NCBI GenBank assembly: GCA_001643675.2
Contig: LSRY02000004.1
Coordinates: 1,426,001 to 1,490,000 of the forward strand
Length of the DNA: 64,000 nucleotides
Direction of reading: 5' to 3'
From: Monocercomonoides exilis PA203
Taxonomy: Eukaryota; Protista; Preaxostyla
Shown here piece by piece: positions 15,935 through 54,189 of the stretch (the first letter of the stretch is position 1; every line of letters begins with the position of its first letter). The translations under genes were made by a program, and so were the position numbers. Below the pieces are notes generated by a model. That model ran no database searches, was not told where the DNA came from, and saw nothing but the letters and a program-made list of their open reading frames with translations.

Positions 15935-16678
15935 ATGAGAAAACTCGTTTGCAAACTGATGATTTATCGAAAATTTTTATGACAATACATTATGTTATAC
16001 ACTTTAAAATATTTTTTTAAACTTGTAGAAATTTCATGAGCAGAAATTGCTGAAGAAAGTTAAATTTGCACCAGAATGGCAAAAAGGAAGTAATCTTCGA
16101 GAAGTTAAAATACTTCGCAGATACCACATTCAAAAAAGAGAAGATTACACACGATATAATAGAATTTGTGGATTAATTACAAGCTTTGTTGCACGCTTAA
16201 AGAAGTTGACTGAAGATGATCCTGTACGCATTGATTTGACTGGAGCTTTACTTGAAAAATGGTACACTTTTATTATTTATAGATTGAAGTTGATTTTCAA
16301 ATTATTTTTTTACAGCTATAACCTTGGCCTTATTAAAACAAAAAAAAGCCTTGTTCAAATTGAAACACTGTCTGCATCAAAATTTTGCAGAAGAAGACTC
16401 CCGGTCGTTATGGTCAGAAATCATATGGCCCAGAATTTAACAGAGGCAACAGCATTTGTTGAACAAGGACGTGTGTAAATACAATTTTGAATATCTTTCA
16501 TTTAATATAAAAATTTATTTCAGATATTCGAGTTGGACTTGACATAATTCGCGATCCATCATTTTTGCTAACAAGGCAAATGGAGGACTATTTAACTTGG
16601 GCTGACAAATCTTCAATTAAACAAAAGATTAAAGCATTCAATGGAGATGTAGATGATTTTGAATTACTTGGTGAATAA
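15935..16678 (+). CDS. IMP3: U3 snoRNP protein IMP3 (S4 domain), 4 exons
   Basis: 12-nt first exon MRKL spliced to KFHEQKLLKKV; RYHIQKREDY..YN, FCRRRLPVVM, FVEQGH/IRVG, TRQMEDYLTW, DDFELL. Confidence 0.93.
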
Positions 16679-16774
16679 ACACACTTCACATTTCATCGTT
16701 TCTCATTTCACTTCACTTCGTTAAATTAATAAACAATAAATGGATATTTATGTCATGATTAAAAACATTAACAA

Positions 16775-21504: not shown

Positions 21505-24500
21505 ATGACTTTAGATTCACAACAGCTTGCAGAGATAAAATCTCAGAATTTCGATCCAGAAAAATGTATTTTGCTATTTTTATTTGTTGGTCATTAATGA
21601 CTTTTTAAAATAGATGTGCTCTCTTTTCTGAAGACTGTTAATTCACTTGAAGATATTCCAGAGCATTTGCAAGATTTGAACACTGCATTTCGCAACAAAA
21701 CAGAGAAGCTTAGTGGCGCAATGCATTCTCGATATGCGACATTTATCGATGCTTCTCTTCAATTTACAGGTACGTTTGATTATTTCCAATATTTCATTTT
21801 TTATCTTTTAATAGGAATGGAAACGCAATTAAATCAAGTCAGTCTGAAAATCAATGACCTTAAGACCTCTTTAAAACATATGAGGGAAATTGCAGAGACA
21901 TACGTTTCAGGTTTGGAGAATTTGGTATATATTTTAATTAATTTATTTATTTTTCCTATGTGATTGAATAGATGAAAATTCAAAAGATAAGCAAGAGCCT
22001 TCACTTCACATACCACCACCACCTCACTATGATGCTTCTTTTGCAGAAAACTGGGAAGACCAGATGGATATATTTATTCAAACCAGACAATTTGACAAAG
22101 CGATTGCAGTTCTAAATTCAAAAGCAGATATTGTTAATCCTGCAATTGTAAGTCGATGGAAAGATATTCTTGGAGATGCTTTAAGTGAGGATGTTGAAAA
22201 GCTTACAAGCGGCGGAGAATTAAATCAAGTTTTGACATGGCTGATGGATCTTGGGCGGAAAGAGCAAGCAATAGTATTATTTTTTGAGCATCGTTCATGG
22301 ATGATCAAAACGATGAAAGCCGCAATTAAGTTTCAAGGAGACATTGTCACGTACATAAAGGAGCTATCTGTCTCATTTTTCACTTCGCTTGTGAAGGGCG
22401 TTGAACAGTTTGTCCTGATGTTCCGGGATTTGGGGAGGATGGGAGACTATATTGCTTGGGCGCTGAACAGCGTGATGAATTTCTGCGATACATTCCGAAT
22501 GCAAGTATTATCCAGTGGGTCTTTGCGGTGCATTGGCGAGTCAATGAAGACTGCGCTGAGCGAGGCTGAGCGTGCGGAGCTAAGTGGATTGCCGTTTGTA
22601 GCGTTTGTGGAAAAGAGATTCCGCGAGGACATTAAGGAAGCCATGGCAAGCTGGGATGTCGAAAGACTGTTTGCGCAGCTCATTGAGGAGGATGCCTCGA
22701 ACGGGTGGATTCCGCGCGAGCTGACAATGGCACAGCTGACAGAAAGTGTGCAGACGCAGTCGAATGATAGGAATCATATGCTTGTGGAAGAGGCTGACGA
22801 AAGAGAAATGTTAGGAGGAGTACGAAGCGAAATGGAAAGTGGAGGAAATTTTGTAAGCGAAGACGGTCGCAAAATGGACATTGGAGATGGGGACGCTGGA
22901 TTTGAGGTGGAGCTTGTTGGAATGGGAGATGTGGAAGAAACATACGGGCAGTCATCCACTCCAACGAATTTCACAAAGATCGGGTCTGCTTCAAGGGTCG
23001 ATGGAGGAGATGGTAACGAAGGGCCCGAAGAGCTTGTCGGAGGACTCAGTGAAGAACAAGGCAATTCCAGAGAGGATGTCGTGGGCAAAGTCAGAAGCAC
23101 CATTCGAGGCGCAGAGAAAAAACCGGATCAGACTTATCGCATTTTACGTTGCGGGCAACATTTTTTCTCTTCAATGACTGGTTATCTTCAAGAAGTGAAG
23201 CTGATAACAGCTGTTGACGTGTGCATATGGGAGCATTTTTTTATTTTTTTGAAAAGGAAAGAGAAAACAAAAACGGGTTAAAAAAGACTTTTTTTAAATT
23301 TTGTGTTTCTTTTTTTTTGAAAATTTCTATTTTGATGATTCTTAATTCCTATTCAATATAAACTTGTTGATTCAGGTACAATCTGAAGTTTTGCGATGGG
23401 TGCTTTCGCTTTTCAATGTGTTCTTTTCGCTGCTTACAAAGAAAGCTGAGTTGACCTTTGTTTATCAATCAGAGCGCCAGTTTGTGTCTTTGCTGTCGAC
23501 AATGACAGTTATCGTGTCAAACGTTGTGGATCCGCTTATTGGCGATGCAGCGCTGGACGGGAACAATGAAATTCTGTTGCTGTCAAAGAAACTGCATCAA
23601 GTAATTGACACTTTCACTTCGCGCTTCCAAGTGACGTATGCTGTGATGCTATTGAAGTATACGCTTACGTTAAATCAAATAGATTATTCAAAGGTTTGTC
23701 TTATAACATTTGTTCTGCGCAGTCAAAAAAAGTATTGTAACTGAATTTATTTTTGTTGTACTTTGTTTGTTTAAAAAAATTTAAATGCTTTCCAAACATA
23801 TTCATTCACTTTTATCTGCAAACAATCCATAGCGTGCATTCAACAAAGAAGATCCACAATTTCCTTCCACTCCGTTTTTGTCGCTTGCCAGTCGAATTGA
23901 GTCATTGACAGCTGTTTCTCGCTCAACTTTTCCGTTTCAGCATCCAAAATTGATTGTATCTGATTGCATTATGCACATTGTGAGGCTTCTTGGAAGGCTG
24001 AATGTTGAAGGGCAGCCTGAGGAGTTTGACAAGGAATCTCCGCTTTTGATCACACGAATTGGGTCAGGAGGTTTGATTATATTGGAATTGTAGTTTATTT
24101 CTTTTTTCATTTTCTTTTTTCATTCATTTATTTATTTCATTATTTTTTTGCTTCTAACAATTATTTTTTATATTCAACATTTAATTTTTTGCTAATTTTT
24201 TGCTGATAATAAATAGGCCTTCATCAGCTTTTGGTTGATATTTGCTTTTTGAAAAGAGCATTTAGAATCTTTCAAAATGAAGAAATAACTGGATATTTTG
24301 AGAAAGTGTGAACAATTTCATATTGCCTTTTTGAGGGTTTTTTATATCACCTGTTTTATTTCTGTATTCTCAATTGAATCATTCCACAAAACACGTTTTT
24401 TATTTAAAGTTAATAAATAGGATTAAACGAATTTATGAAGAGATGAATCGACTTCCAAGTGAAAACCAGCAAGTGATGGTTTGAATCATTTTTCAAAAAG

Positions 24501-32259: not shown

Positions 32260-32769
32260 GGGGGAAAATACGGACTTTCAAGCTTTTTTGCACAAAGCAA
32301 TAAATAGTTGTTTCGCTCATAACTTTATGAATCTTTCTCAGATTAGAAAATAAATTGGGTTTTCATATCTGCAAACAGGGATATATAATTGCGTAACATA
32401 ATGTTTTGTGACATCACATGTATTTCAAAAAATGAACCCAATTTATTTGTATTTTTTGTTCAGAAAAAGTTAATAAAAAGTGCATATGGGTAATTCTTTT
32501 TGAAAAGTCTCAAATGTTTATTTTTCAAATAAATCAAAATATTCATTTTTGGCTCAAATTTTCGTTTCCACTTACGAATCTTCTAAAGTATTCATGAAAT
32601 GGCATTATCCAGAAATAGATTCCATTTTGGTGAAATTTTGTGCATGTTACAAAAATTTGAGTTAAATATGAAATTTTTGATTTATTTGAAAAATAAACAT
32701 TTGCGACTTTTCAAAAAGAATTACACATATTTTTTCAAAGAAAATCTCTGAAGTCTAATATTTTGTCCC
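32260..32769. mobile_element. MITE family C, interrupted by a family B MITE
   Basis: GGGGGAAAATACGG...TTTTGTCCC with ATGT TSD; 267 bp once the nested element and one TSD copy are removed. Confidence 0.8.
32488..32726. mobile_element. MITE family B, second copy
   Basis: Colinear with 12044-12283; imperfect long TIRs; ATAT TSD. Confidence 0.88.
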
Positions 32770-33522: not shown

Positions 33523-34389
33523 GGGTGATTATTTTTGAAATCATATTTCTTCATTCAAAAATTTCGGCGCAAAAATATTTCTTGAATATCAACAAAAGAA
33601 CGATGAAAAGTGAAAAGCCTTATTGAACACATGGGTGATTTTTTTTGATATCATAAAAAAAGATCAAAAAATGAAAAAATTAATTCTATTGTGGTAATTT
33701 TTGATCAATGAGTCAAATTGATTTTTATTAAGTATTTAGCTTTTATTTCTGTCATATATATTTGTTTTATTCATTAATGAGAAAAAAGACATACCTTTTT
33801 GATGTTTTTGTGGAAAAGAATTTTTTTGATCAAGTGAAATAAAAATGAACCAAAAACTAATAAATAAAACTTCAAAAAAAAAAAAAAATAGAAGTTTCAA
33901 GATTTACTGAACAATACCGATAATTGGAAAATAATATTTAAAGAACTTTAAAAAATGCAACAAATTTGGAATTTTTATTTTTCCGTTGAAAAAGCAATGT
34001 GCTTTTCATTAATCTATCTGAAACCTCATCAAAATATTCCAGTATCTGCTGATCAGCCCAACAGACTAAGTAAATATCGTTTCAAAAAATAAATGAGTTA
34101 CAATAATTAATGATAACAACTTACATAAACTCTTCTTTTTCTCTTAATTCTTCATATTACATTTCCATTCAGATTCTTTCTTATCCTCCATTCATTTTTC
34201 TTCAGTTTCTGCTCTCCTTCATCTTAATTCCTTATTTGAAAATGCAACTCATATTGTCTTCTTTTATCTCCAACACTTTTATCTCCAATAATCTCATGGC
34301 ATCCTTTTATCTCTTCTTTCACGAAAAAATAACTTGTAAAGCTTTTTCTGTTATTTCTTTTTGTACAATTTCTTTTCTTTCTTCTTCTT

Positions 34390-37300
34390 TCAGCCAACTC
34401 CCTCTTCCTCAACCACATCTTCATCACCAGTCTCACTTTTCACAACCCCAGCATATTCCACCTCACTTCCCTCACAGTACCCCTTCTCCTTCAACTCCTT
34501 CAACATCTCCAACTGTTTCATTAGCAGCGTCATCTTGGAATACAGAAACAAGCAAACTTCCTCACGTGACATGTTTTCTTTGACGTAAAGATCAGCCAGT
34601 TCTGTGTGATCGAAGAGGTGAACGAAGGAAGAAAAAGAAGGAAGAAGAAGAAAAAGAAGGAAGAAGAAGAAAAAGAAGGAAGAGTAAGAGATAGAGGAAG
34701 AGTAAGAGGAAGAAGAAGAAGAGTAAGAGGAAGAAGAAGAAGAGTAAGAGGAAGAAGAAGAGAAGAAGAAGGGCGATGCTGCAACCTCTGTGCAGAGAGC
34801 CTTCTTCTTGCAGTGGTTGGTGTCTGTGCAGGAGAATCGAGTGGAGACGAAGGAGAATACGACAGAAGCACACGGACAGGCGCAGAAGGCGTTGAATTCA
34901 ATGAATTAGACAGGGAAGTGCGGTCAGATGGAGGCAGAGAGGAGGTGGATGTGATGTTTGTGTTGATGTGATTGTCAGATGAATGCGATGTGAAGGAAGA
35001 GCAGCTGCTGGCTGAGAGCTCAATCGCTCCTGCTGATTGTAAGTGTGGGGTGGTGCTTCTCAAATGAGATGATGATGATGATGATGATGAAGAGAAAGAA
35101 TTTGAATAAGAAGAAGAAGAAGAAACAACCGAAGAAGCAGTTGAAATGACTGTTTGTGGTTCATTTATTTCTTGTTCTTGTTTCTCTCTTTCTGCTTCTG
35201 CTCCTGTTTTCTTCACCCCATTTCCTTCTTCTTTGAACTTGGCACTCTCCTTCGCTTTTTCCTCCTCCATCATTCGATACACCCTCAGCTCATTCATCCT
35301 CTTCTGCTTCATCCGTTCCTCTCGAACTTCTTCTTCTTCCTCCTCTTCTTCTTCTCCTCCTCTTCCTTCTTCTCCTCCTTCCTCATTCGCCTTCTCCTTC
35401 TCCTTCTCCTTCTCCTTCTCCTTCTCCCTGTTCCTTCCTCTCTCGTTGTTCATCATCATGCCCCATCGTCTCTTCTCCTTCTTCTTCCCCACAACTTTCT
35501 CTGCATAGCTGTCAAACCGGTAAACTTCCACCAGCTCCTGCTTCCTCTGCGGTATGTGCTCAACTCGTGCCTGCTCAGCATCATCATTCACGTGGTCTCC
35601 TTGAATGAGTGAGAAATCGAGTGGAAGAGGTGGAATATACTCAAGGGGTTGTTTGGATCCTTCAACTGAAGAGGAAAAAGAAGAGGAAAAAGAAGAGGAA
35701 AAAGAAGAGGAAGAAGAAGAGGAAGAAGAAGTCTTTGAAATATCTGCTTGTATCGTCACTTTGGTCGGCACCAAACTTGATCTTGTGTTTGCGTGCAAAC
35801 CTTCTCCATGACTGTTGTTCTGCTGCTGATGAGCACGATAAGAGGAAGAGGTGGAAGAAGAAGAAGAAGAAGGATACTGCTGGCTTGACTGCCCAGCTAA
35901 TCTGCGTGACTTGGTGAGTGACTGTGCTGTAGATGAAGGGCGAGGTGGATATGCATGCAGAGCAACTGTGGTGGTGGTTGTGGCAGAGGAGCCAGAAGAG
36001 ACAGAACTGGAGTTGTAAGGGTGTATTGAAAAAGAAGTGATAGAAGAAGCAGGAGAAGAAGAAGAAGAGGAGGAGGAGGAAGCTGAATACAATCTGGCAG
36101 ACTCCACACGTGTGGGCGACAGATACACCCTGTCTCCGTTCTGCAGCTGGGCTGGTGAGTTGATTGTGCTGTACCTGCCATTCACACCAGGAGAAATAGC
36201 AGAAGCATTCGAAGAAGAAGAAGAATAAGAAGAGGAAGAAGAAGAAGAAGATGATGATGAATTCATTGTTCCTATTGAAGTCCTTCGAGCGTTCCTTGAC
36301 GACGCAAAAGTGCTCCCAGCGCGGGACGAGCCAGGGGGAACAGCTGCAGACGAAGGCTGATAGAAAGAAGGTGTGGAGACAGCAGGCAAAGCGTGTGTTT
36401 GTGTGTCGCAGAACGTGGTGGCTGGAAAAGAAGGCTGGCGACACGCACTCGAAAGCGATTTAGGCACAGTTCTGTCACCATCATTGGATTTTTCTCTTTC
36501 TCTTTCATTTTCTCTTTCTCTCTTTCTTTCTCTTGAAGAATCATTACTTCTCCCTCTTTTCCCCACTGCGTATCGGAACGACCGCTCCATCACAACCACT
36601 GCCCCATCAGCTGCATTTGTGTCTGTCTGTAGTTGTTCATTCACCTCTTCCTCTTCTCCTTCTCTTCCTTCCCTTTCTCCTTCTCATTCTTCTTCCTCTC
36701 TAACATCTGCATTAAACTCCCCTTCCTTTCCTCTTTCACCAAATCCTTCATGTGCCCCTGTCAAGTTGTGCATCATTAGATTCGCCTTCGACGACGAAAA
36801 CCGCAGCGCCGGTGACAAAATCGGTGGATAGCTCTCTTGTTGCTCTGTCTGCTCTGACTGCTCGGCTGCTTCATTTGAATTCTCGTTCACTCCAATTCGA
36901 CGGTCACTGAAAAGCGGCTCTTCATCAAAGCTATCTTTTGAACCATTTGTCTGATAGCGCGGAAAGCCAGATTCGAATCTCTCTCTGTCGTGAGAATTGT
37001 ATTCAATTTCGTCTTGCTCGTTTTCATGTTTTTCTTTCCTTCCCTCTCTCTGTTCCCCTCCTTCTCTTTCTTCTCCTTCTCCTTCCTCCTTCTTATTTTT
37101 CCTCATCTCCCTCAATTCTCTCTCTTTTCTCAAATATGCAATCTGTTCACTCATCGACATCAAATGAAATGGCTTCGGCTGGTTTGTCTCTCCTTGTGTG
37201 TTTTGCTTAGTCCCATTATTTACAGAGGAAGAAGCAGAAGTCGAAGAAGTAGATGAAGATGAAGAAGTTGTATTTGAAGAAGATGCTGTTTGTGCTGCTG

Positions 37301-37427
37301 CTCCAAACGCCGAAGATGTGCCACCTCCGCTCTGCTCCGCCTGTAGCCCCAGCGCCTCAATCCCTCTTTCTCCTCTAAACCTCCTCACCAGCCCCCCCCC
37401 CCCCCCCCCTCTCTCTCTCTCTCTCAT
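34390..37427 (-). pseudogene. Decayed Ser/Glu-rich host-like gene in the left arm
   Basis: ORFs 36684-37427 and 34530-36644 are in the same frame, separated by a single TGA (36684-86); the 3' end shifts into a poly-Leu reading of poly-Ser DNA, indicating a frameshift. Limits approximate. Confidence 0.6.
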
Positions 37428-38490
37428 TCACACTTCTCACTATTCCCAATGAGCTGCAACAAATATCTGCTTGTGAATCCACTCACAAAATGAAGAGGAA
37501 ACAGCGCATCGAGGCAAGCAGGAAGAACACAAAGTGGTATAACATTCAATCAATGAGGGGAAAAAAGTGAGAAGGCATAGAGAAGAAATGATGAAAGAAG
37601 ATCGATGATTGATGAGAAGCATTTTGTATGTGCTCTGATTGCATGCATCTGACGCAAATGAAAAGAATGGAGGCAACTCATTCGCCAGGCAGTGCATCTC
37701 GAGATTGCAATTGAAGAGATGGGTATATAACAGAGAAGATGCAGATATCCGGAAAGAAGAAGAGGAGGAGGAATTGCAGCAGAAGATATGTTTGATAGCC
37801 AAATGTGTGCTGCACAAACAGAAACGCCAAATTATCAACGTCAAGCTTGCTGTTTGCAAAAATTACAAATTGTTTCAAGAGCAAAATCCGAGTGAAGTTG
37901 GACAGAATGTTGTTCGACTGCCAACAAATATTTGATAATTGGATTTCTCGTTGTTGGCGTTTTTCCTTTCTTTTGAAGCAAAAGCGGTATCAGAAATAGA
38001 TTTTCGTTGCTTTCCATGTCTGCCCAGCACAGTCCGAGAAATAGGAAAGCCTTATAAATAAAACTGATATTTTGGGGTTCTCCTTTTTTCCCTTGAATTG
38101 TGGCTATTTTTTGTGATAAATATCCTTCTCTTGATGTTGCCAGCCACTTTCCTTTTCCAAAAATATCACAAACTGTTCCCCCTGCCTTATGCTTCCAAAA
38201 TGCTACATAATTTTGTGCAGATTTTGTCCTTCGCAGAATTCCATCCATAAATCTTCATTCAATAAAATAACAATTGAATTTGTATTCATCTCTTGTTCCA
38301 AATAAAAATCATGTATCTTGCGTAACTTCCTTTATATCCCAATTGCTATATAATAATATGTTCTATTCTCATCGTAATGCTCTCCAACGTGAAGATTTGC
38401 TATTTGACAGACAAGAAAAGTTCCTTTTCTTTGAAAAGGAAGCAAACAGAGCAGTTTTCCAATATAATGAAAAAATTGTAATATTATCAT

Positions 38491-38959
38491 AAACATTAAA
38501 AAATAGAAAGTATTAGCAAACCCGCAAAAAGTTGGAAAAGCAAGTGGTTTTAAAAAAATGAAAGAAACAAAACTCCAGCTTTAATCAGAACCATATCTTT
38601 TTGAATTTTTGAATATTTATTAAAAAAAAAACAAATATCAGAAAATTTTTGATTTTTTGTTTAATAGTTATTTATGTGATAAGAGTTAGAAAAATGTTTT
38701 TTCTGAATTTTAAAAACTTGTATTCATGGAAAAAACTTCTGTTTTCCGCTTCAAACAATGAAGATGACAGAAGGATCAGAATCTCGATGCCACTTTTTTT
38801 TGTTCAAAATGGTTTATTTCATCGATTTAACTTCATCTATAACCAAAAAACTGCTTTTTGAAATCTGCAATTTTCGCCCTTTAGCGCGTAATTTTTTGAT
38901 CTTTTTGCCCTCGAAAAAAATAAAATATAGGGTCGGATCCTTTTTTTCATTCAAAATTG
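38491..38959 (+). repeat. Left copy of the 469-bp internal inverted repeat
   Basis: Reverse complement of 46483-46951; the spurious ORFs in both copies translate identically over the repeat. Confidence 0.95.
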
Positions 38960-39350
38960 ACAATGTTGAGAATAGTCGAATTTATAAAATTTGTAATTTA
39001 AAAATCGTAAACGGACAGTTAGCTTATAGAATTTCCGATATTAAATTTTATTTATTTTTTTAATAGCAATGTTAATGTTATTGATGTTTTCATATTTTTC
39101 ATTTTTTATTTTTATTTTAAATTATGATATGTTTTTTTGTAATTTTGAAGGATTTGTCATTTCATGAGAAATTTGTAATTCAAATAAAAAATATTTCATT
39201 CATTTTAAATGCTTTCTTGAGAAAACTGTTAAAAACAAACTGAAAATATCAAGAGAGGGAGTGAGAAAATTGAAAAAAGAAAAATTCTAAAATAAAAATC
39301 GTTAGGAAAAAAAAAGTAAAAATTAAAGCAAAAATAAACAAAGAACAAAA

Positions 39351-41245
39351 TCATTCAATCATTTGGTTTATTCTATAAAAACAAATTGCACCATTCCATC
39401 CTTCATTTGCCATTGCTTTCCAATATGCTTCATTGAAATGGGAATTCACCTGAGATATAACTCCATCATTGCACTCCAGCAGACTAAGCTCCCCAGTCGA
39501 TTCATCTCTTCCATCAACAACAACTGCTATAAAATGACCAATAGGCAAAGGTTTCATCGAATGAAGGACATATCCAATGAAATTGTAATCAATCCTAGGA
39601 AAGAAAGAAAACTCATGTTTCAGTTGATTTGTTGCACATGACGTCACCACCATCGATTTCGGAGTGGATCCACTTCCATGAAATGTGATAGTTTTGGGCG
39701 GTTGCATAACAGGGGAGTTTTCCTTTGAGCTATGATAAATTGCAAGGATTTTTGGGAACCTGTCAATTTGTGTCCAATACAAAAATGAAGTCTTGCACCC
39801 ACAATAAGCATCAACACATGGTTCCTCAGTTGATAACTGATCTGTTGCAGACAATGACAAATTTAACCCCTTCACAATCGATGGATGCATGATGGTGAAA
39901 TAAAACGAAGGATTTTGGTTATGAACACGAACATGAGAACACTTCACACACAGTTTGAATGAAGATTGCTTCACTGTGAAGTCTTTCTTGACATTGCACC
40001 CCTCCAAAAATGCATCGTTCAGAATTGCTTCATATGCCGTTGTGACCCCTAATGGATCAGATTTGCTCCCACCATGTTTTTGCACAAAATTCATAAATGC
40101 TGGAGTTCCCCACACTTTGTTTGTCACAGTTCTCCCTCTGATTGCACTGAAAAGTCTTCTGAAAATATACACTCCTCCACGTCTTTTTTTGATATCATAT
40201 TGCACTCCAAACGATGCCAGACATTGACAAATAGAAGCTAAAGCACATGATGATCCAAAATTTTTCAACTCCCTCCCACAATTCACCAACACCTGAACAT
40301 ATGAACGTGATTCTTTTGGTAAAGGATGAGCTGGAAATAGAAACGAAGGAGGAAATTGAAAAAAGCTACTCATTTGTGGAACTGTTGAAAGAACAGAATA
40401 AGGATTTCCTAATGCTTCCATTGAAGACTGTTGCTTCAAAGCAACAAACAAAAAAATAAACAAATAATTATTGATTTGCCTGTAAAATTGAATCAGGCAA
40501 TTTTTGAAAAAAAAAAAAAAAACAAACCTCTATTTCCATTTTCATTCCTCCTCCTTTAATATCTGAACATTTTTTATCTTTGCTCATTTTTAAACATTCA
40601 TCGCTCTCCGTTTCTTCATCGTCGCTTTCTTCTTCTTCAGACATTTGATCAACCACTTCATCTTCGTCTGAAGATATTACACTGTAACTTGATGAAGAAG
40701 ATTGCTTCCGAAAAATTGATTGAATTGAATTCTCTTCCTTTTTATCCTTCAAACATTCACCCAAACAGTTGATCTTGTAATTGAAATCTTGTATCAGTTC
40801 TTGCTGAGAAAACCACTCAGTCAGACACAGCAGCATTTTTTCTTGGATATACGGGTTCGATTCATTGAACGGGAGCTTCAATTTTTGGACAATCTTATGT
40901 AATGGTGCTTTTTTATATACAAATAATAAAAAAATAAAAACATAATAAATATCAAAATAAAAAATTATTAATTACAAAAAACAAAGAAAATAAAGGAAAA
41001 ACAAAAAGCAAACATCCATAATTTTTCATCAGATTATTCATTAGCGAGTTTCCGGGGATCGATTTGATAAAAAATTCGAAGAGGACTTTATTTGCATGAT
41101 CAACTGACATTTTTCTGAAAAAGTTCGATAGCATGTCCACATCATTCATTATGCTTTGTTTTCTCATGCTTGTGTGCGCACGGGAAAATCGAGAACCAGA
41201 CAACCTCCCACTTGACATTATGAATTTCCTTTTATTGGGTTTCAT
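39351..41245 (-). CDS. Transposon accessory protein (~562 aa): transposase-like N-terminal domain plus USP (peptidase C19) domain, no DDD domain
   Basis: Exons 41245-41014, 40907-40528, ~40427-39351 (GT-AG, in frame); Cys box LKNFGSSCALASICQCL, CxxC fingers, His box GHFIAVV...ECNDG. Confidence 0.82.
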
Positions 41246-41394
41246 CAGATTTTCACTAAAAATTTCAATTTGAAATATTTAATTCACATTTATAATAAAA
41301 AAAAATTATAAACTCTCTGGCTTTGGAAAAAAATCCAAAATCCTTTCATTCATCGAGAAAAAAATAAATTCAATTTTTTCTGTTTGAAAATTAA

Positions 41395-41600
41395 AAACAA
41401 TGACGATCACAAAATGACAATATTATCATGTGTCTGATTTATGCCGGAAATGATAAATAACGACATATGTACTTTATTTATTGGAAAAAAACTGTTTTCT
41501 GCTCCTTGCACTTTCCCCCCTTTAGCACTTTTTTTTTGATCTTTTTGACTCCTTCGAATTTTGAATTATGGATCTGATTCTTTTTTCATTGAAGAACAAT
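41395..41600 (+). repeat. Diverged third copy of the inner part of the 469-bp repeat, between the two divergent genes
   Basis: AAACAATGACGATCAC...CCTTTAGCACTTTTTTTTTGATCTTTTTGAC...GATTCTTTTTTCATT aligns with ~38753-38960. Confidence 0.7.
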
Positions 41601-41899
41601 ATTATATATATTTTTAAGAACTTTTTATGTGAGAATGATATTTTTCATAAGACAAGAATATTTATGTGATGAATTTTTCAATAAACCTTCAATTTAAGAA
41701 TACTTAAATTTTTCCAATTTTTTTCTGATAAGAAATTTTTAAAATTTTTTTCTATAATTCAAATCATGTTAAAAAATTTTTTTAACAATTTTGGGTATAG
41801 TCAAATAATGAAAAAATAACAATACAAATTTTTTTAAATTAAAAAAAATTTATTTAGAATAATTGTGATTTACCATAAGAAAACATTTATTAGAGAAAA

Positions 41900-44209
41900 A
41901 TGTCGTTTTCTAAACGCGAATCGACATTAAATTCTCGATGCAATGTTCTATGGCAAGAAATAAAGCGCATCGGCGGAAATGACGTGGATTCGTTGCTTGC
42001 CTATTTGTTTTACACTTACAGGCAATCATCTTCAGTAATTAATGATTTACTGAAGTCTTTGAATGGTTTGGTTTTTTATTTTTTTGTATTGTGTTAAAAA
42101 TGTTATTTTGACTCTCGATTATTTTTTTCATTTGTATTTGTTTATTATTTATTTTTTTTGAAACAGAATATCACATAAAGCTGCTGGAAGACCTGTCTGT
42201 GGTGTACAACAACGCTCCATTGCACACTCAGACAACAATGCTGCAGGCGTTGTCTCGAAACACATCATTATCCGATTTACAGGACTATGGATATGATGTC
42301 ACAGAAGGAAAATTTATTTATGCGAAGCAAACGCTCAAAAAGAACCAAGGATTTATCATTCCTCCACAAAAACCTCATCTTCCGTCTTGCAAAAGTGGTT
42401 TGTTTTTATTTGAATTTTTTTTTTTGAATAATTTTCTCTGTTTATTTTAGGCTTAAATGAACAGGATTGGGAAAAGGGCAACAACTGGATGTTAGCCCAT
42501 TCAACTGAAGCCTCCACTTCGCTTCAGTCAGCAAAGAAAAAGCAGCGAACTGAGCCAGATTACGCAAGATTTATTGATGAAGCAGCTTGGGAAGAAGAAA
42601 TAATTACGGAAAATTCTTCTTCAAATAAAAAACAATCTTCTTCTTCTTCAACATCATCTCAACAAAATAAAAATTCAAAAACCATTTCAGAAAAAAATTC
42701 TTCTTCTTCAAATTCTTCTCCATCTCAAGCTGTTGATGCCCCTGTCAGTACTCCAATTAGGAGAGAAAGGGGTACAACAAAGAATCAAAATAAAAATTCA
42801 AATCACAAACGTCATTCTTCTCCATCTCCAATACCAATTCACAAAATATTCAAATCAAAAACTTCTTCTTCACAAATTTCAATTACAAAAAAATTGAAAG
42901 AAAAAATAAATTCTTCATCATTTCAAAATGATAATGTGTTTGTGAGTGAGCAATTAGTTGATTATGCCACTTCACCCACATTAATTCCACCTCAAGCATT
43001 TCAAACTCTTTTTTCTTCATTTTCTAAAGAGAATGACACTTCAACAGTTCAACAACAAAGCATTCAATCTACAAATAATGAAATATCTATTCAAAACAAT
43101 TCTTCAAAAAATATTTCAAAAAAGAATGCTAAAGAAAATTCAACAAAAAATCATTCTCATTCTCAATCTTCTTCAAATTCATTTAATACTTCGAAAACAT
43201 CATCACAAATAGCAAAAGGATTGCCAAACTTAGGCAACACATGCTATTTGGCTTCTCTTCTTCAATGTTTCTCTTCAATAACTATTCAAAAACCATCTTT
43301 ATTCAAAAAACAAACATCTTTGAAGAACACTCCTTCGCGTGTTGTAAGTGTTTGTCATCAATTGGCTAAAGATGGAACGTCAGTGCGTTCATGGATCCCA
43401 TCTCTTATTGACAAATGGGAAGATTTCTGCAACTATGGCAGCAGACAGCAACAAAATGTTGCTGAGGCGTTTGAAAATCTTCACCGACTTCTTCAAAAAG
43501 ATGAGTTGATAAGCAAGGATTCCTTCAATCCAGTAATCATCACTCATTTCAAATGCCAAAAATGCCAACAAATCACATCACATTTCAATGAATTTTGTAG
43601 CAATATTGTTATCAATTCTTCATCAACGCAACATGGATTATCTTCTCTCTTTGCAACTGAAGTTTTGGAAGGAAAGAATAGTGTCTATTGTGATGCATGC
43701 AAGGAAAAATGCTGTGCTGCGAGATGGGAGGAAATGGCTGCATTTCCAGAGGTGCTAGCCCTCTGTCATGAATGTACTGATTCTGCTAGTTCAGCACCTT
43801 CGAGAACATTACTAATGGAAACAGACAGAGTCAATCAACGCACGTTTTGCAAAGGGTTTTCTTCTAAAGATATTCAACATCTTCAAAAAGATAATCAAGA
43901 AACCATCATATATCATTTTTCTGGACAAATACTATTCAAACGTTTGAATCAAAATAATGGACACTACATTGCTGTTGTAAAAAGGAAAAATGGACATGAT
44001 ATCAAATGGAATGTTTGCAATGATGCTGATATGACAGAATTTGATAATGATAAATGGAATTCATCATGGAAAGATATTTACGCTCAGGGTTACACTCCTT
44101 CTCTTTCTTTCTACACAAAAGAAAAAACAAAACCAACACTATCTGCTATTCAATTTGGTGGTTCTTCTTCTTCTTCAGAAACATCAAATTTAAACACTTT
44201 AAATAACAT

Positions 44210-44253
<44 letters not shown>

Positions 44254-45614
44254 TCATCACTCCACTTCATCCAACAACTTCCATTCCACAACTATCATCA
44301 TCAATTACATCTTTTTATGGATTGGAAGCTTTGAAAGAAAAAAGAAAGAAAATGGGTATCTTTTCTCCCAACGAGAAAAGATTGATCTTCAAGCCCAAGA
44401 CGAAATTATGGAAAGAGTTTACAGAAGAAACAAATATTAAAGTTTCATTATCTCACTTCTACAAACTCACCACCAACTTCTCCAAAGCAAAAAGGCGCAC
44501 AGATCTCTGTGGCATGTGTGAGAAGTTGAACTATTTGGAGAATAAACTCAAATCTTCACAAAACAAAAATGGACTTTCTTCTGCTGAGTTTCACACTCTG
44601 AAACTTCTTCGACAACATCGTCTTGTTGCAGAAATGCAACGAAAACATTATCAATCAACTGTTGATAATCTGAAAGAGGGAGAAGCAGTCTTCGTCTTCG
44701 ACTTCAAAGAGAAGTGGAAACTGCCAATCCGAAAGAACCAACTTCAACAAGAGTTCTTTAACTATCAACAAGTTTCTCAATTCACAATCATCTCACTTCA
44801 AAAAATAAATAATCAACAAATAAAAAGAACATTCAACTTCTTCTCCGACTGCCTCTCAAATGATCACAGATTTGTTATTGAGTGTCTGGAATCTGTGGTC
44901 AAAAGACACTTCTTCGCAGACACTCACACTTTTAAGTTCTTCTGCGATTCAGGTCCACACAACCGAAATCGCTTCCTTCTTCACTTCATCCTCTCCAAAC
45001 AATCCAAACTTCTCAAAAAGAAAAATACTCAACTCAACTTCTTCGCTGAGCACCACGGAAAAAATATTTGTGATAGTGAATTTGGTGCGTTAGTGAATGC
45101 AATCGACAACAATCTTTCGACAGAACACATCACCACACTTCATGACTTAATCAACTTCTTCGAAAACAATATGAATAATTCGACATCAGCTTCTTCAACT
45201 TCACAATCGAACAACTTCTCAACATCATCAAACTCTTCACCATCTTCAACATCTGTCAATGACTCTGTGCATGAGAGGTACTTTGAAGAATATGAACCAT
45301 CTCAACAAATCTCGTGGCCATCATTGTCAGTTCCCCACATGAAAGATTACTTGTATTTTGAGCGCAAGGGCTCATTTGTCTGTGCTTCGGCTGTTGGATA
45401 TCTTCCTCAACGCTCTCTGGTTGCCCTCGAATCTTCGACAATGAAAGAAAAGGTTCAACGAACAAGGAAGTCATTTCACTCTGATATCACATCATCAAAC
45501 TCTTCTCTTCTTTCTCAATCTTCTCAAGATCTTCTTTCAAGGAGATTTGAGCTTCTTCTCGACTCTTCTTCTTTTAATGAATCTCAAAATTGTTCTTTTG
45601 GTGTCCCCTATTAA
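41900..45614 (+). CDS. Sola2-like DDD transposase with inserted USP deubiquitinase domain (~1186 aa, 3 exons)
   Basis: Exons 41900-42065, 42167-42397, 42451-45614 (3561 nt). USP: GLPNLGNTCYLASLLQCF, QQNVAE, CQKC/CDAC, GHYIAVVK..W..CND. Transposase: RTDLCGMCE..H, DFKEK (D 44700), SDCLSND, FFCDSG..NRN (D 44946), FFAEHHGKNICD (D 45072). Confidence 0.88.
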
Positions 45615-45623
45615 GAAACTAGT

Positions 45624-45751
45624 TGTTGTGTATGCTTAGCTGGCACTCTATCGGAAGGGTGCTGGACATGACTGTTCGTATTAGATATTGCAGCCTTCGG
45701 GCTGCAATATCCGGACCTGGATACGACGAACAGCCTCCCAGGTGCACAACA
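45624..45751 (+). ncRNA. Candidate structured RNA element directly after the transposase stop
   Basis: 12-bp perfect stem GATATTGCAGCC-TTCG-GGCTGCAATATC (45684-45711) nested in CTGTTCGT/ACGAACAG and TGTTGTGTA/TGCACAACA stems. Confidence 0.5.
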
Positions 45752-46482
45752 GTTAGAATCCGATTGTTTTCTTGTGCTTTTTGTCCCTATAATGTCCCTA
45801 TAATTAAATTGGTTATTGTCCCGCTTATATTTGTATTAATCGAGATTCATAAATAGAGAGAGTTGTGAGGGAATTCATTGATCTTTGAGTGAGGTTTTTG
45901 GAAGGGAGAGTTGTTGAGAGTGTGAAGTGATGTTTTATTATTGTGTCTGTCTTTTTTCTTTGTTGAATTTGATCTTTTTGAGTCAAAGTGAGAGAAATAT
46001 CAGAAAGGGGAGAGTGGATGGAAAACAGATGGAAAATAGACAAGTTTGTTTTTGAACCTTTAATATAAGTATTCTTTTTTGTTTGGAATTGTCTTTGATA
46101 CCATGAATTTGTTGAAATAGTGCTATTTCTTCTTATATTTTTCATTGTTCAAAATTGTTGATATTTAGTTGATATTTGGTGATTGTTTTATGATTATGTG
46201 ACAGAATTGTGTTTTTTTGAAAGTTATTGAATTTGATTAGAAAATTTCTAACTGTTTTCAATTTTTTAAATGATTAATATCATGAAGTACTTTTTGTTTT
46301 TTTATGTCATTTTGATTGGTGGATGATTGTTATTTTTTGACGTATTTTTTTTCATTTCACTCATTTTTCTATGATTTTCAGTAAAACTCAATTACAAAAA
46401 TGAAACACATTTTTGAAACGACCACTCATCTAATCATTCAGTAATGCATGAAAAATGAAAAAATATGACACATATTCAACAA

Positions 46483-46951
46483 CAATTTTGAATGAAAAAA
46501 AGGATCCGACCCTATATTTTATTTTTTTCGAGGGCAAAAAGATCAAAAAATTACGCGCTAAAGGGCGAAAATTGCAGATTTCAAAAAGCAGTTTTTTGGT
46601 TATAGATGAAGTTAAATCGATGAAATAAACCATTTTGAACAAAAAAAAGTGGCATCGAGATTCTGATCCTTCTGTCATCTTCATTGTTTGAAGCGGAAAA
46701 CAGAAGTTTTTTCCATGAATACAAGTTTTTAAAATTCAGAAAAAACATTTTTCTAACTCTTATCACATAAATAACTATTAAACAAAAAATCAAAAATTTT
46801 CTGATATTTGTTTTTTTTTTAATAAATATTCAAAAATTCAAAAAGATATGGTTCTGATTAAAGCTGGAGTTTTGTTTCTTTCATTTTTTTAAAACCACTT
46901 GCTTTTCCAACTTTTTGCGGGTTTGCTAATACTTTCTATTTTTTAATGTTT
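46483..46951 (-). repeat. Right copy of the 469-bp internal inverted repeat
   Basis: Reverse complement of 38491-38959. Confidence 0.95.
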
Positions 46952-47649
46952 GTAGTAATGCTATTATTTCTCAAATATATTTTTTATTTACCACTTTTTT
47001 TAAAAAATATGTCAAAATATATTCAAAATCTTTTTATTTTATATTTGTTTGTCAGTAATATCTGATTCTTATAATGTTGGCCTGTATATATCTTGCATTG
47101 TAGTTTCTATTGAAATGGTTTTTAAAAATAAAGAATTTCATCAGATTCTGCTTTCAACCGAACATATTTTCTGGCGCTGATTGAGTTCACTCTGCTGCTC
47201 GTACACCAACAAGAAGAATGAAATATCATGCATTCATTCATCTTATTGGCGAGTTGCATCAATGATTGAAACAGTGGCATTTTTTTTTAATGTGAAAGTG
47301 CTTTCACAGCGCGTTGTGGCTAATGCAATGAGACGGGGAATTCAATTGTTTGTCGGCTGGAGACAGCAGTGGAAGAGCAAGAAAGGTAAAAGAATGCTCA
47401 TGTTTTATGCAGGACAAGGGAGATTTGTTTTGTAGAAACAGAACTGCAGAGAAAGGAAACGAACGAGAACTAAAGATGGAGGTAAGATAAAGGAATGAGA
47501 AGCAAGAGAGGTAGAATAGAAAATAAGAAAGGTTATTTTGTTCAATCTATTTAATTCAATCTTCTTTTTTTTTTTCAATTTTGAACTTAATAATTATAAT
47601 TTCAAGATCCTTGCATGATTTTTTATTATTTTTTCTCTGATTCAGATAC

Positions 47650-50600
47650 AGATAACATTCTCACATGGCTTTTTTTGACGAAGCAGATGCGTCAGTTGAA
47701 TATGCTAGTCTCAGAATTGCGAGCAGAAAACAGATGGTGCGGCGTTGGTGTGCGTCCATTTGGTTGGTGATGGGCTGAAACATGGGGTGCCGAGAGTTGA
47801 TAGTCGAAGTACAAAGTGCAGTAGTCGATTGGGCTGTTTGAGTGGAAGATGCAGGAGCATCGGCAGAACCTGGCGCGGATGCGGGAGTTTGATAAGCCAC
47901 GAAAGACATAGCGGACAGCTGGAGCAGCAGAAGTGGTGTCGCCGACGCTGCTACTGCTGAAGCCGCGGGGGGAGTTCTATAAGGAATCGGAGCTTTCGTG
48001 CGTGACTGCGGTGCATAAGAAGAAAATTATCTGGGAAGATAACAAAGTGTTAGTGAAGCTGCTTGAGTGCAAGAAGTGTGAGCCTTGTGAAGTTGTGTTA
48101 AAGATACGGGAGACATGACGGGAGCTGAACTGAAAGATGGGAGATAAGAATGTGAAGAGGATGGAGGTGGAGATGAGCAAGAGGATGATTGCGAGTCAGT
48201 CGATGGAAGAGAGAAAGTGGAAGAGAGAGAAGAAAAAGAAGGAGATGAAGACAATGAGAACTGCAACAAGATGGAGGATGAGAGAGAAGAACGAAATTTT
48301 GTTCAGCGGAGATAACATAGAAGGGAAATTGACGTCGCCAATTGAGAGAGAAAGAGAAAGAGGAAATAGAATTGAACACGAGGGTTCTTTATAGACAGAG
48401 AAAGATGGCATTTCCAAAAGCAAAGTCGATAGAATGATACATTTGGAGTCATTTGATGGAGGCAGAACATCTCTCGTTATTCCTTCCTGCGAAGAATGGC
48501 TGCTGTCAGGAAAAGTTGTGGCAGACGAAGAGTTTTTGAGTTCCATTCAACAAATGAGGGAGACAGAAGTGGCAGGGGCAAATGCTATGAGAAGGAACAG
48601 AAGAGGAGATGGGTCATTTTGTGTTGAAGACGAAGAGGAAGAAGAGAGAAGGAAAAACGAGCTGAGTGTACTGAACGGGAGTGAGTCTGAAGCATCAATA
48701 TCGACTTCGAAGAAAAGCATACGTGCTTGTGATACGTCTTCAGTGATTTTATCATTATCATCTTCAATGCCTTCTTCCTCTTCTCGGAGAAGCAAGACGT
48801 TTTTCCGCGATCCAAAGGATGAATCCAAAATGACAGCGAAAAGGAAGAAATGCAGCAAGGATGACATGGTTCTGTTCCAAGAAGACGAAGATTATTACTT
48901 CTGGTCAAAGAACACAACTGCAAACAAATCATTAAGCCCATCTATTTCTCAATCACAGGCATCGTCTTCATCTTCCCCTCAGATTTCTTCATGATTTCTC
49001 CACAATGTGCCAGCAAACACACAAAGGCTCCACGAAGCAACCTTCTTGTGATGATGGAAGGGATGAAGAGGAGGAAAGAGGAGAAGAAGAACACAGATTC
49101 TCTTTCGCTATGCTCATCACTGACACCTGAAAGGATACTGACTCTGATTTCAGCTAATGATATTGCGCCTGCAGATGACAAGTGGTTTGAGGAGAAAGAG
49201 AAAGATGTGGATGTAGTGAAAGGAGCAATAAACGAAGGCGAGAATGAAATTTGACGAAAGATTGAGGCGAATAAAAGAAAGGAAGTTGAGAGAAGAAAGA
49301 GAAAGAGAAGCAGAAAGAATGAACAACTTGCCTTTTAACCAGCAAAATGCTATTAACACAACGTTAAATGGACCAAATCAGACTCTTCAGTCAACGCTCC
49401 AATCAACTTGATCAGCATCCTTCTCTTCTTCTCCTTCCTCCTCTTCCTTATCATCATCTTATCATCTTCTCTATCCTCACATATTCCATCTAATTTCAAT
49501 CTTGTTGCCAATGCTTTGTCTTTTTCACATCAATCACTTTTCCCCCTCTTTCAATGTGATCTTTTCTCCTTCTTCCACCTACATTCAAACTCCCACTTAT
49601 CAAATGAAGCATCCCGTTTCAATGCCCACTTTGCTTTCCTGAGCCAAAATTGACGGCTAATCCAAACCACATCGAACGAATTGAGTTGGAGAAAGCGATA
49701 TAGCCGAAGATGGAGAAGATGCAGAAGAATGAGGCAGAGAAGGATACAAAGGAGCAGCTGGAGGAAGAGAAGGAAAACTCGGAGAAAGATCAGGAAAAGC
49801 TCGAAGACGAGCAGAAGAAGGCGCTGGAGCAGGCTGAGAAGAAGCGGGAGGCATTTGCCTCGTATCTGAAGAAGAAGAAGATTGAGAGAAGCGAATCGAA
49901 TTTCAAAAGTGGAGCAAAGCAGAGGAAGGTGCGGATGAAGGAGAATGTTGAATCGCTTTCTTGTTGTTTGGATGATGAAGGAGCTGTCGATTCGAGATGA
50001 TCTGTATTTTGACAGACAGGCTGTTCTATTTGGAAGCTTTGGAGATGTGTTTCCCAATAAAAGCACATTTTCAGCTGCAGAAGAAGGAAAAGATAGTATT
50101 TCTGAAAACTTATCTTCTTCAAAAGAACAACAAAAGAAGAAGAAAAAGAAGAACAAGAAGAAAATTGCATTTAAATAGAACAAAAACATTCGGAGCAAAA
50201 GCGAAGCGAAAATGCGAAGGCGTTTTTCGATGTTTAATTTGAGAGATTATTTTGCTTCTTCTTCTGCTCCTTTGCAGAAAAGCATGCTATTTGATGAATG
50301 TCTTGTGAAATACAAAGAAAATTTGCAAGCACATCAAAAAAAGCGTGAAAGAAGCTTCTTCTTCTTCTTTTCCTCTTTGGATTCTTCTGCTAATAGTGGT
50401 GAAGCTGAAGTTTCGCAGCCTTATTTGCCATTTCCAAGTACATCTGCTTCTTCTTCTTCTTCTTCTTCTTCTTTAAAGCCTCACTCACATTCTCATTCCT
50501 CAAAGTCATCCATTCAAAACCCAGCTCATCAACAACTACCTTATCACCTTCCTCAACAGCTGTACCAACTGCTTCATCATCATCACCTTCTTCTTCAACT

Positions 50601-53040
50601 TCTTCTATTTCGTCTTATTCATCAGCCTTTCAAAATACTTCTGTTATAAAACAATTTTTTTATCCCCTCCAGCCACTTGCACAGACACACAAGAAGCACA
50701 GCAGCCACACACTCAAACCGATCTCTATTGCGCATCCACATTCAACCCTCTCGCAAAATGCTTCTGAAATCAAAAGACAGAAGAAGAAGTTAACAGTAAG
50801 TCAGAAGCGAAACTCATCTCTTTCGTCTTCTTCTGCAAAGACTCAACTGACTATTTCAACATTTTCTGCGCATTCATACGCAGTTACATATTCTTCTTCT
50901 TTGTTTTCTTCCTCTTCCTCTTCTTCTGTTTCTCAAGAACCACCTTGTTCGCCCCGCCCCACCTTTCCTTAATTTCTCCACCACTGAGTCGGCTGTGCTG
51001 AGGCTTGCGGGCAGAGAAGCACGATGGAAGACAGCGTGTTGCTGCTGCCCATTGATGGATGAGGCGTAGAGAAGCTTGTGTGCGATGGAGAAGAGGGGAT
51101 TTTGGCTCGCATACTGAAATATCCGCAGGAGCTGAGGTTTGGTGAGAAAGGAATGAAGGCACTGGAAGACAGAGAGGATGAGATCTGGGCAAGGATGATG
51201 AGAGAGAAAGAGAAAAGGAAGAAGGAAAGAATGGAAAAGGAAAAGAGAGGAAGAAAAGAGAAAGAAAAGAAGAAGAGGATGATAAATCCAGAAATAAGCT
51301 AAATACAAACACAGAAGCAAGTAATGTTGAAATTAACTCACAAACGTTGCCTTCATCTTCTCCTTCGTAGTCATCATCTTCTTCTTTATATTCTTCAACA
51401 AAAAGTATTTAAGAACAGAATGTGAATGCACACACAACAAATGCAGCTGATGATGCTTTTCTTCAACCTCCTCTGAATATTCCTCCTCCTCCTCCTCTTT
51501 CCACTCAAGCTCAATTCAATGCCTCTGCTCTCTTCTCAACTACTTCTTCCATACTCCCCTATGCACCTCTTCTTCTTCTTCTTTTTCTTCTTCTTATCCT
51601 TCCTCTTCCTCTTCTTCGTATTCCCTTTTTCTGCTTTCTCTTCCCCATCCTCTTATTTTCCCTTCACAACTCGATTCATCTTCATCGTCTCCTTCTCCTT
51701 CTTCCCCTTCTTATCTCTCTTTCTCTCAGAGTTAAGAATGACAGATTTCAAGGTGTGTCTTTTCATCTGTTTCTTCCTTAACACGAAAGCCTGAAAGCAT
51801 TGATACGAAAGGCAGAGGAGAGAGATGATTGTTAATTCAGCGCCGAGTGAATCAACAGTTGAGGAGCCACTAAGATGTGCCAGGAAAAATGACTCCGCCT
51901 CCTCATTTGAACGAGGCGATCTTGAGTGCTCTAACAGATCAAGCAGATGAGGTTGCAGCTGGCAGTGAGGGAAAATAAACAAATGGAAAGGCTTTAACTG
52001 GTGAGCTGGAAGCTGTCGGCATGCACACTCCAACAGAGCTGAGCGAGCGAGATGGCAGTGAAGACGAAATGAATCGTGCTGAAGAAGCTTATTGACTGAT
52101 AAAACACAGCGAGATGAGAATGACAACACTGAAACCTCCAAAGGCGAGATCCGTGTCGATGAGATGCTCGATGGAGCAGCTGGAGCCATCGTCGAGCAGG
52201 AGCAGATGCTGGCAGCACTGAGGACGGAGAGGTTGGTGTCGGAGGGGAAGAGGGAGGAAGCGGGGAGAGCACGAAGAGCAGGGCATGTGAAGTGGAAGGA
52301 ATAAACAGATATGTTGGAGGGGCGAAGGGTTCTTCAACAAGAACAAATGAGGGTGGGGTTGAGGCGGACGAGCTGGTCAGCCGCGGAAAAGAGGAAGGAG
52401 TACACAGCTAGTTATCCGTCGAGGAGGGAGAAGAGGGAAGAGTGGGCTGATCCAGAGGGAGTTTTCTATTGAGCGGCAGATGCAGAGTACAACAGTGGAA
52501 AGGGAGATGCAGGTCTCAAGCAGGTAGCTGCACTGGCAGGCAGAGGTTCAGGTGTCCTGCTCGACGAACATTTAGTAGGCGCGTAAGAATGTGATTAAGG
52601 GGAGGAGTCGGCATCGATGTTGGGGTCTGTGGGAGGAGTGGAAGGCGAAGTGGAGGTTGAAAATGAGAGTGGGAGGTGGGGGCCGGCTGTGGTCAGCACG
52701 AATCCGCTGAGCTCATCGATGGCAAACACCACGCAACCCAAGCCATGTGTCTGTGCCTGGCCTCGCAACCTCCTCTGGACTCGCTGCGATCTTTGCACGA
52801 CCCCCGTCTTCGCTCCCCTTCTCCCCACCCCTGCCATCTTCTCACACCTGCTGCACTCCACCACGCTGATGCTCCCAGTGCACATGGTCTGTGAAAACAA
52901 CGTGCTCGCCACTTCTTCCAGTGTTTCGAACTTGCACAGTATCAGCCTCCAAGAGCTGATTGTTATCAGCCCGAAAATAATCATCTCTACTTTCTAAAAT
53001 CACCCTTTGCATTCTCATTCAGGGTTGAAACTGAACCAAG
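47650..53040 (+). pseudogene. Heavily decayed host-like gene (charged and Ser-rich blocks) in the right arm
   Basis: Coding-like GC content and GAA/TCT-rich blocks, but only short ORFs (<=186 aa on +) in shifting frames with many stops. Limits approximate. Confidence 0.6.
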
Positions 53041-54189
53041 CAAGGCTGATGAAAAATGCAAAAAAAATTATTCACATATCTGTCCAGCTTTAAAAGTGAT
53101 TTTCGAAGAGGAAGAAATAGCACAGAGAAATATATTCAGAAAAATAATTGAATGGAATGTTCACCAAGCAAATTAGGCAATGCTAAAAAGAAAAACAGAT
53201 GATAAAAAAGATGAGATCATTATATTTGTGGGCTTTTTAAGTGGAAAAAGTAGATAATTTTGTATTTCTTTTTATTTTTTTTAATATTTTCTTTGTAAAT
53301 TTTTTAAAAAACTTTGATCAATTTGACAAAATAATTTCTTTTAAGTATTGTTTATTTCCAAGCAAATATCAACTTCTAATTGTTGCATATCTGATAAATA
53401 TCTTGTTTAACTATTATATTTTTCATTTGTGTTTTTGAAAATTGTTTGTTTTCAACAAAAGTTTTATGATCTTCAGAATTAATTTTAAAATTTCTTTGTA
53501 ATAACTCATAAAACTAATTTTCATATTAAAAAATTATTGATTTCATATAGTTATTATTGTTATCATGTTGTATTAACGATTAGGCAAGTATCTTGTTCTT
53601 TTTATTGAATTCTTTATATTTTTGAATAATTTTTTATGTTTTTTTCAAAATATGAAATAAAAACAATTTGAAATGAATTAAAATCAAAAAATAAGCAATA
53701 ACAACTATATACAAAGCAATATTTTTGCATGATCATCATTTTTATTTTTCTTTTTTAAGCAACCCTTAATGAAAATTTTTTATGATCAAACGTCGGAATT
53801 TTTTATGATATCAAAAAAAATCACCCACATTTAAATCTTCAATTCGGTAAAAACATTTGTTTCAAAATCAATTATCATGCTTTTTCTCTTTTGTATTAAA
53901 ATTTTCTTTCAAAAAACCAACAATCATTGAAAAGTTAACACCCCGAAAAAAGATATGATTTCAAAAATAATCACCCATATATATATATATATATATATCT
54001 CAATATTGGTTTTGCTGTTCGACCGACATGCATATTTTTATTTTCACTTGTCGCAAAGGCCTTCTTTTAACAGATGAATTTGATTGTGAAAAAGGTAATA
54101 GAAAACAATCCTTTTTTTTTCACTGTTTATGACTCTAATGAAAAATCAATAAAGTATGGTTTTGATCATAATCAAATCTAGATATTTCA

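Follow-up and report, generated by a model that had tools for sequence, protein, structure and literature searches.

Sola2 transposons with cargo in the range of 10-15 kb, CACTA elements of 16-20 kb and the capture of UCH domains by Helitron-like elements are already known. The cargo-bearing Sola2 elements were described in Dictyostelids, where DFa-1/2/3 and PPa-1/4/5 carry Fanzor and measure 10.3-15.3 kb (PMC3627910), the enlarged CACTA elements occur in Chondrus crispus (reviewed in PMC6431247), and Helitron-like elements captured OTU, UCH or Ulp1 domains (PMC11417382). The repeats of Monocercomonoides exilis are mostly unclassified (PMC8767320). We analyzed a 64-kb window from the genome of this mitochondrion-less protist (the whole stretch of DNA under study) which contains an element of 20,194 bp at positions 33633-53826, and we regard this element as very probably an autonomous Sola2 cut-and-paste transposon with a USP-bearing transposase and passenger arms. 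Neither this family nor a USP inside a DDE transposase was described in the literature that we searched.

The M. exilis family resembles the Dictyostelid Sola2-Fanzor elements in its transposase motif series, short TIRs, AT-rich AWWT 4-bp duplications and possession of cargo, and in both cases families keep one part in common whereas the other arm is replaced. The M. exilis elements are however longer (17-24 kb against 10-15 kb) and more numerous (about 100 autonomous-type copies against 2-12), and unlike their Dictyostelid counterparts they have a USP in the transposase, an invertible central core and cargo on two sides, and no Fanzor. A reading made from the sequence alone, before this analysis (the sequence-only reading), had taken Sola2 elements to be normally a few kb long and this one to be unusually large; the size of 20.2 kb stands, whereas a large Sola2 with cargo has its precedent in the Dictyostelid elements (PMC3627910).

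Pack-MULEs and the C. crispus CACTA elements are likewise TIR elements swollen with gene fragments or extra frames, with CACTA being close in size, but they belong to other transposase superfamilies and have duplications of another length; in addition, Pack-MULEs are non-autonomous whereas the M. exilis elements keep an intact transposase (PMC6431247). The likeness to Helitron-like elements lies in a transposon that stably carries a ubiquitin- or SUMO-removing protease, UCH included, with a role that is predicted in both, although Helitron-like elements are rolling-circle transposons and the M. exilis USP sits between the N-terminal region and the DDD catalytic core. Polintons/Mavericks are similar in their 15-25 kb, their TIRs, a DDE enzyme and a cysteine protease (PMC6431247), whereas the element described here has a 4-bp duplication and an integrase of Sola2 type and not of retroviral type. 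Assignment to the Polintons/Mavericks was rejected, with no Pfam match to polymerase B, packaging ATPase or capsid found in the long frames of the element.

Ends, target duplication and insertion site

The two TIRs (33633-33660 on the forward strand and 53799-53826 on the reverse strand) are identical at all 28 positions, begin with GGG and end with CCC, and are flanked on each side by ACAT. None of 100 shuffled controls had two such end matches. The left TIR is followed by a left-type subterminal region extending to about 34070, which is common to all family members with 75-84% identity, and the right TIR is preceded by a right-type subterminal region starting at about 53290. The two ends, one of left type and one of right type, enclose a DDD transposase gene, and a 4-bp AT-rich target was duplicated on insertion.

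The flanks are the two halves of one MITE, both on the forward strand. The left half (33523-33632) ends in the first ACAT (33629-33632), and the second ACAT (53827-53830) is followed by the right half, the two together occupying 53827-53976. When joined, 33523-33632 and 53831-53976 give 256 bp that align without a gap across the junction to the reverse complement of 13511-13768 (258 bp). The latter is an intact reverse-strand copy of the MITE with AAAT on both flanks and a single ACAT at the junction point, and it serves as a paralogous empty site. Twelve further unbroken MITE copies were found in the genome with the 36-bp empty junction (at most three mismatches), eleven of them with a single ACAT, so that the target is defined independently. 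At the right junction a short-read contig of single-copy depth shows no differences, reaching only 11 bases into the element, and none of the read-level pieces covers the element in full. Both the perfect TIRs bordered twice by ACAT and the split MITE with its empty site inside the window had been proposed by the sequence-only reading, and both were confirmed on re-reading.

The TIR of the split MITE itself (33523-33544 and 53955-53976) is identical to that of the giant element at 20 of 22 positions, and copies of this MITE have AWWT duplications; because of these two features it is classed, from sequence, as a Sola2-type MITE. In principle, the composite as a whole could be mobilized by the outer ends of this MITE. 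A further MITE (11956-12452), which has related TIRs and a duplicated ACAT, is split by a foldback element of 250-290 bp (12022-12308), which recurs at 32483-32730. Ordinary host genes are also present in the window at 22064-23281 and 16775-17437, with matches to the Exo84 C-terminal domain and, weakly, to a metalloenzyme.

The family in the genome

The M. exilis genome assembly (82.3 Mb, 101 contigs) was searched for further members. A total of 396 matches to the TIR were found with up to two mismatches, against none for the reversed control. The transposase core is encoded at no fewer than 99 places with 82-100% identity, and in 46 transposase copies the frame is open over at least 1,050 aa without a stop. 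For the 36 transposase copies on contigs 1-24, an inward TIR was observed among the TIR matches listed within 30 kb in 29 cases, mostly at 7-14 kb.

Element sizes are mostly 17-24 kb. We read five more copies of full size (19,759, 19,494, 21,148, 21,974 and 16,960 bp), all with the same ends and core as the window element and each with its own 4-bp duplication; further full-length copies with different duplications, which had been named earlier as the check on this element, therefore exist. A perfect AWWT duplication was present in eight of nine fetched copies, and AWWT precedes 84 of the first 100 perfect TIRs as compared to about 7% expected from base composition by our own estimate. AWWT is the preference of the family, and the ACAT of the window copy is a minority target.

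A sister copy of 20,468 bp on contig C58 (1530736-1551203) is collinear with the window element over the left end, left arm, both genes, right arm and right end with 92-98% identity; like the inverted sisters and the C11 loci described below, it is known by coordinates and identity alone. A deletion derivative of 6.9 kb (C20:68757-75618) has lost the middle, with about 37108 joined to about 50443. Because of this collinear sister and this derivative, the whole 20-kb unit appears to have moved and spread. The same two copies link the TIRs to the interior, which counters the possibility raised earlier that each end belongs to an independent short element.

Many members are short and non-autonomous, and some are arranged head to head in pairs; a 31-kb TIR pair on C34 was rejected as a giant since it consists of two short elements. 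A 35-kb pair on C24 is a candidate giant. An intact Tc1/mariner transposase of 342 aa (Pfam) lies nested in the C24 copy close to one of its ends (copy position 495-1523), adding about 1.2 kb. A non-autonomous member with a large insert (C7:1458081-1470859) has a first frame with no Pfam match and a second frame that ends like a hAT dimerization domain when judged by eye. Members nested in or adjoining each other produce composite TIR pairs on C18, C9 and C38:127984. Many transposase or USP copies lie less than 30 kb from a contig start (C50, C91, C78, C45, C10, C24, C56 and others), reflecting either subtelomeric enrichment or assembly breaks at repeats.

The transposase and its assignment to Sola2

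The transposase gene (41900-45614, forward strand) is open and encodes about 1,190 aa in three predicted exons (41900-42065, 42167-42397 and 42451-45614), a structure mapped from the MONOS_11334 model. Both small exons were found to be under purifying selection in five other copies. The CxxC-H motif and the RNase H-like catalytic core occupy 44320-45200 on the same strand, with aspartates at 44700, 44946 and 45072 that are invariant in an alignment of 64 homologs. The motifs TD-CxxC...H, DFKE, (W/C)-x-D-x-G-x-H and HGK-x-x-CD are all present, and a by-eye comparison plus alignment shows that their order and spacing agree with those of Sola2_DFa-2 and Sola2_PPa-1 (PMC3627910). A total of 643 relatives of the core were found, among them Streblomastix and Blattamonas proteins. 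As modelled (pLDDT 83), it folds like DDE transposases, RNase H-like with an acidic triad, and the IstA and Hermes transposases are its best PDB matches.

Sola2 ends reportedly follow the GRG...CYC rule attributed to Bao et al. in 2009, and the 28-bp GGG...CCC ends of the window element fit it. The DFa-2 element begins with GAG. Sola3 elements have TTAA targets and long TIRs, and this class was ruled out as the targets here are AWWT, the TIRs are 28 bp long and the 499-bp internal repeats have no duplication. Judged from its sequence, the element is a Sola2 by every feature tested (motifs, AWWT 4-bp duplication and short TIRs), and the identity proposed at the outset was upheld by the motif series, the AT-rich 4-bp duplication, the GGG/CCC ends and the DDD triad. 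A hairpin after the transposase stop folds barely better than its shuffles (z -1.45). A USP-free relative of 587 aa with 40% identity was found in a JGI metagenome, where a TIR-like end similar to those of the present family lies about 440 bp past the stop (contig 2455-2480) and is followed by AATT; this locus is a possible compact relative. In Blattamonas the homolog is a protein of 1,578 aa with no Pfam domain, and it sits in an element of 9.2 kb with imperfect TIRs of 48 bp (contig 9749-18925).

Two USP genes of unequal standing

Pfam UCH matches were found in two window genes (E 8e-11 and 2e-6), both past the curated cut-off. The first is the transposase, in which the USP (peptidase C19) domain lies at 43215-44123 on the forward strand, with Cys at 43242, His at 43962 and Asp at 44022, and has USP15 and USP21 as its best PDB matches. 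With a profile built on the 64 homologs, exon 2 (E 1.7e-6) and the core are matched in turn, separated by an insert of about 600 residues that holds the USP. These 64 outside homologs, including MONOS_18616 which represents a second Sola2 family in M. exilis, contain no UCH domain, and close relatives of the USP occur in M. exilis only.

All six full-size copies read have the USP inside the transposase. Across them the catalytic Cys, His and Asp and both zinc-ligand CxxC pairs are invariant at synonymous distances of up to 1.4, and no indel is found in 303 codons. The dN/dS of the USP is 0.14-0.31 as compared to 0.03-0.05 for the transposase core, and at about 0.2 it indicates that the USP is maintained by selection. 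Synonymous divergence is also higher in the USP (0.4-1.4 versus 0.4-0.5 in the core), which suggests sequence exchange within the transposase gene. A distant USP match at C80:1108780-1109706, about 13 kb away from a copy of the transposase, is part of a 5,878-codon open frame, and several other distant matches are in frames of 900-1,400 codons.

The second gene (39351-41245, reverse strand; predicted exons 41245-41014, 40907-40528 and 40433-39351) is divergently oriented to the transposase and consists of a transposase 5' part and a USP with no DDD core. The USPs of the two genes are 23% identical. The two models were compared one exon at a time, and the first two exons align with no or almost no gaps, at scores reached by 13 of 2,000 and 2 of 5,000 shuffles; BLASTP with single exons of the second gene against the transposase was not significant, and a profile match of the second gene to the transposase homologs has an E-value of 0.002. 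The exon alignments that beat the shuffles, together with the profile match, identify the second gene as a truncated paralog of the transposase. It is found with at least 64% identity in about 15 elements and is missing in the five other full-size copies read, and further copies have more distant USP genes at 8-14 kb from the transposase. The two protease-bearing genes of the sequence-only reading are thus real as two UCH/USP domains and are not equivalent, with one being inside the transposase and the other a subfamily-limited paralog.

Internal repeats and orientation of the core

The 499-bp internal inverted repeats that had been noted beforehand (38461-38959 on the forward and 46483-46981 on the reverse strand) were recovered with 98% identity, and they have neither a target duplication nor a GGG end. 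They enclose a core of 8.5 kb that holds both genes. A remnant of the inner end of the repeat (41486-41593, forward strand, 72%) lies upstream of the transposase. In eleven close sisters the core is oriented as in the window five times (C36, C58, C59, C80 and C91) and reversed six times (C15, C23, C28, C44, C50 and C93), which points to inversion of the core, and the switch falls within the 499-bp repeat. C80 has the right-arm type of the reversed copies, from which its core differs in orientation. The six reversed copies may reflect either one inherited inversion or several.

In C12 the core is reversed between another repeat of 597 bp, and four copies have the core flanked by a third repeat, which is decayed. 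The window element, C12 and the C1a type have mutually unrelated repeats; since unrelated repeats occur at the same place with no duplications, the comparison argues that repair produced them repeatedly and that they do not mark the ends of a nested element. Module ends fall in purine/pyrimidine tracts more often than random arm positions do (p = 0.0005), to which the stopping of BLAST at simple repeats may contribute.

Cargo arms

The left arm (34100-38460, reverse strand) contains a Ser/Glu-rich frame of 965 codons (37427-34533) with an in-frame TGA at 36686-36684, plus fragments, and the right arm (46982-53300) contains broken-up low-complexity frames on both strands and is modular between copies. 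Together the arms make up about 11 kb with a GC content of 39-54% and broken frames, and Pfam gave no match for the window cargo frames of either arm. Only the ends and the core are common to the window element and five distant copies, in which left and right arms assort independently; the left arm is exchangeable between subfamilies, consistent with an exchange of modules. Between copies the arm frames mostly show stops, frameshifts and dN/dS of 0.44-1.15, with one cargo frame in other copies at 0.33 on few changes. We infer that the arms are passengers under little constraint, and mostly decaying.

Two loci on C11 are 88-89% identical to the left-arm frame and have neither the element's left end nor a perfect TIR nearby, which makes them candidate donors. 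No donor gene for the cargo was identified in genome and protein comparisons, and the sole protein match of the arms is MONOS_17072, which is probably the C58 sister copy. The proposal of about 11 kb of decayed host-like DNA therefore holds for the decay, while a host-like origin is plausible with no donor gene found. A weak PDEase_I match (E 8.5e-4, below the cut-off) in the right arm of another subfamily (copy position 2992-3540) is a possible lead to a donor gene.

Proposed mechanism and alternative explanations

In the mechanism that we propose, the transposase would pair the 28-bp ends whatever lies between them, and because such pairing ignores the intervening content the interior could grow; excision by end pairing is taken from general knowledge of cut-and-paste elements. 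Gain of copies and swapping of arms would occur via excision-gap repair and ectopic recombination among the many copies, with switching often at GAA/TCT tracts, and would yield arm exchange and deletion derivatives. The same recombination would flip the core between the internal inverted repeats. The second gene would have arisen long ago by duplication of the 5' part of the transposase; it would be dispensable and serve as an extra source of USP in one subfamily.

The USP is probably an active deubiquitinase that helps transposition in cis as part of the transposase. It might strip degradation or inactivation marks off the transposase itself, or it might act at the donor and target sites by taking ubiquitin off chromatin or repair proteins; we hold both options tentatively and give them equal weight. 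Its activity on ubiquitin is predicted, its substrate is a guess, and the role in cis on the transposase or nearby chromatin is one that we infer and offer for testing.

Two short elements of independent origin, or else an assembly error, could have joined the ends around host DNA, as short members are common and a head-to-head pair exists on C34. This is extremely improbable given the identical duplication on both sides with contiguous MITE halves, the pairing of one left-type with one right-type end, the full-length sister on another contig and the right junction in a short-read contig at single-copy depth (although with 11 bases inside the element only). The nearly identical repeats enclosing both genes would fit a core that is a long-TIR transposon of its own, nested in a non-autonomous element of 11.7 kb. 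We consider such nesting very unlikely and largely refuted, since the borders of the repeats lack a duplication and a GGG end, the window, C12 and C1a-type repeats are unrelated, the repeated stretch reaches 1-1.3 kb further outward in other copies and the core lies midway between the outer TIRs across subfamilies.

More room is left for the arms being old accessory genes of the element, diverged and decaying, instead of captured host DNA. Nearly all arm matches fall in other family members, and the only protein match is the probable sister copy; on the other hand, arms of separate subfamilies are unrelated even in a translated search except for one short segment, and the C11 copies have neither the left end of this element nor a perfect TIR close by, so that we judge this origin to be the less likely one without dismissing it. 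It is rather improbable that the USP plays no part in transposition, as a tolerated passenger or folded spacer, or that it serves the host. Its absence from the outside homologs and from the Sola2 family of MONOS_18616 and its roughly fivefold faster evolution than the core would agree with this, but the invariant catalytic residues and zinc ligands, the 303 indel-free codons in six copies and the second USP gene staying open in several sisters speak against it. A USP-bearing autonomous Sola2 with passenger arms is the explanation that we retain.

Implications

The family accounts for about 2 Mb or more of the genome by our estimate (about 100 copies of 20 kb), including many MONOS genes annotated as hypothetical. 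Ubiquitin- or SUMO-removing proteases are carried by many unrelated transposons for a reason that nobody has shown, and since this genome holds dozens of open transposase copies with an intact, selected USP as well as a relative that is free of it, the question is testable by one point mutant. A plain DDD transposase that repeatedly moves about 20 kb is relevant to large-cargo vectors. At its widest, and as a speculation that we think is unlikely to hold in full, the family may represent a modular giant DDE transposon that needs its built-in deubiquitinase in cis against ubiquitin-based host control and whose recurrently invertible, exchangeable core pairs the enzyme with different arms, which would make it a eukaryotic cargo shuttle with no viral genes.
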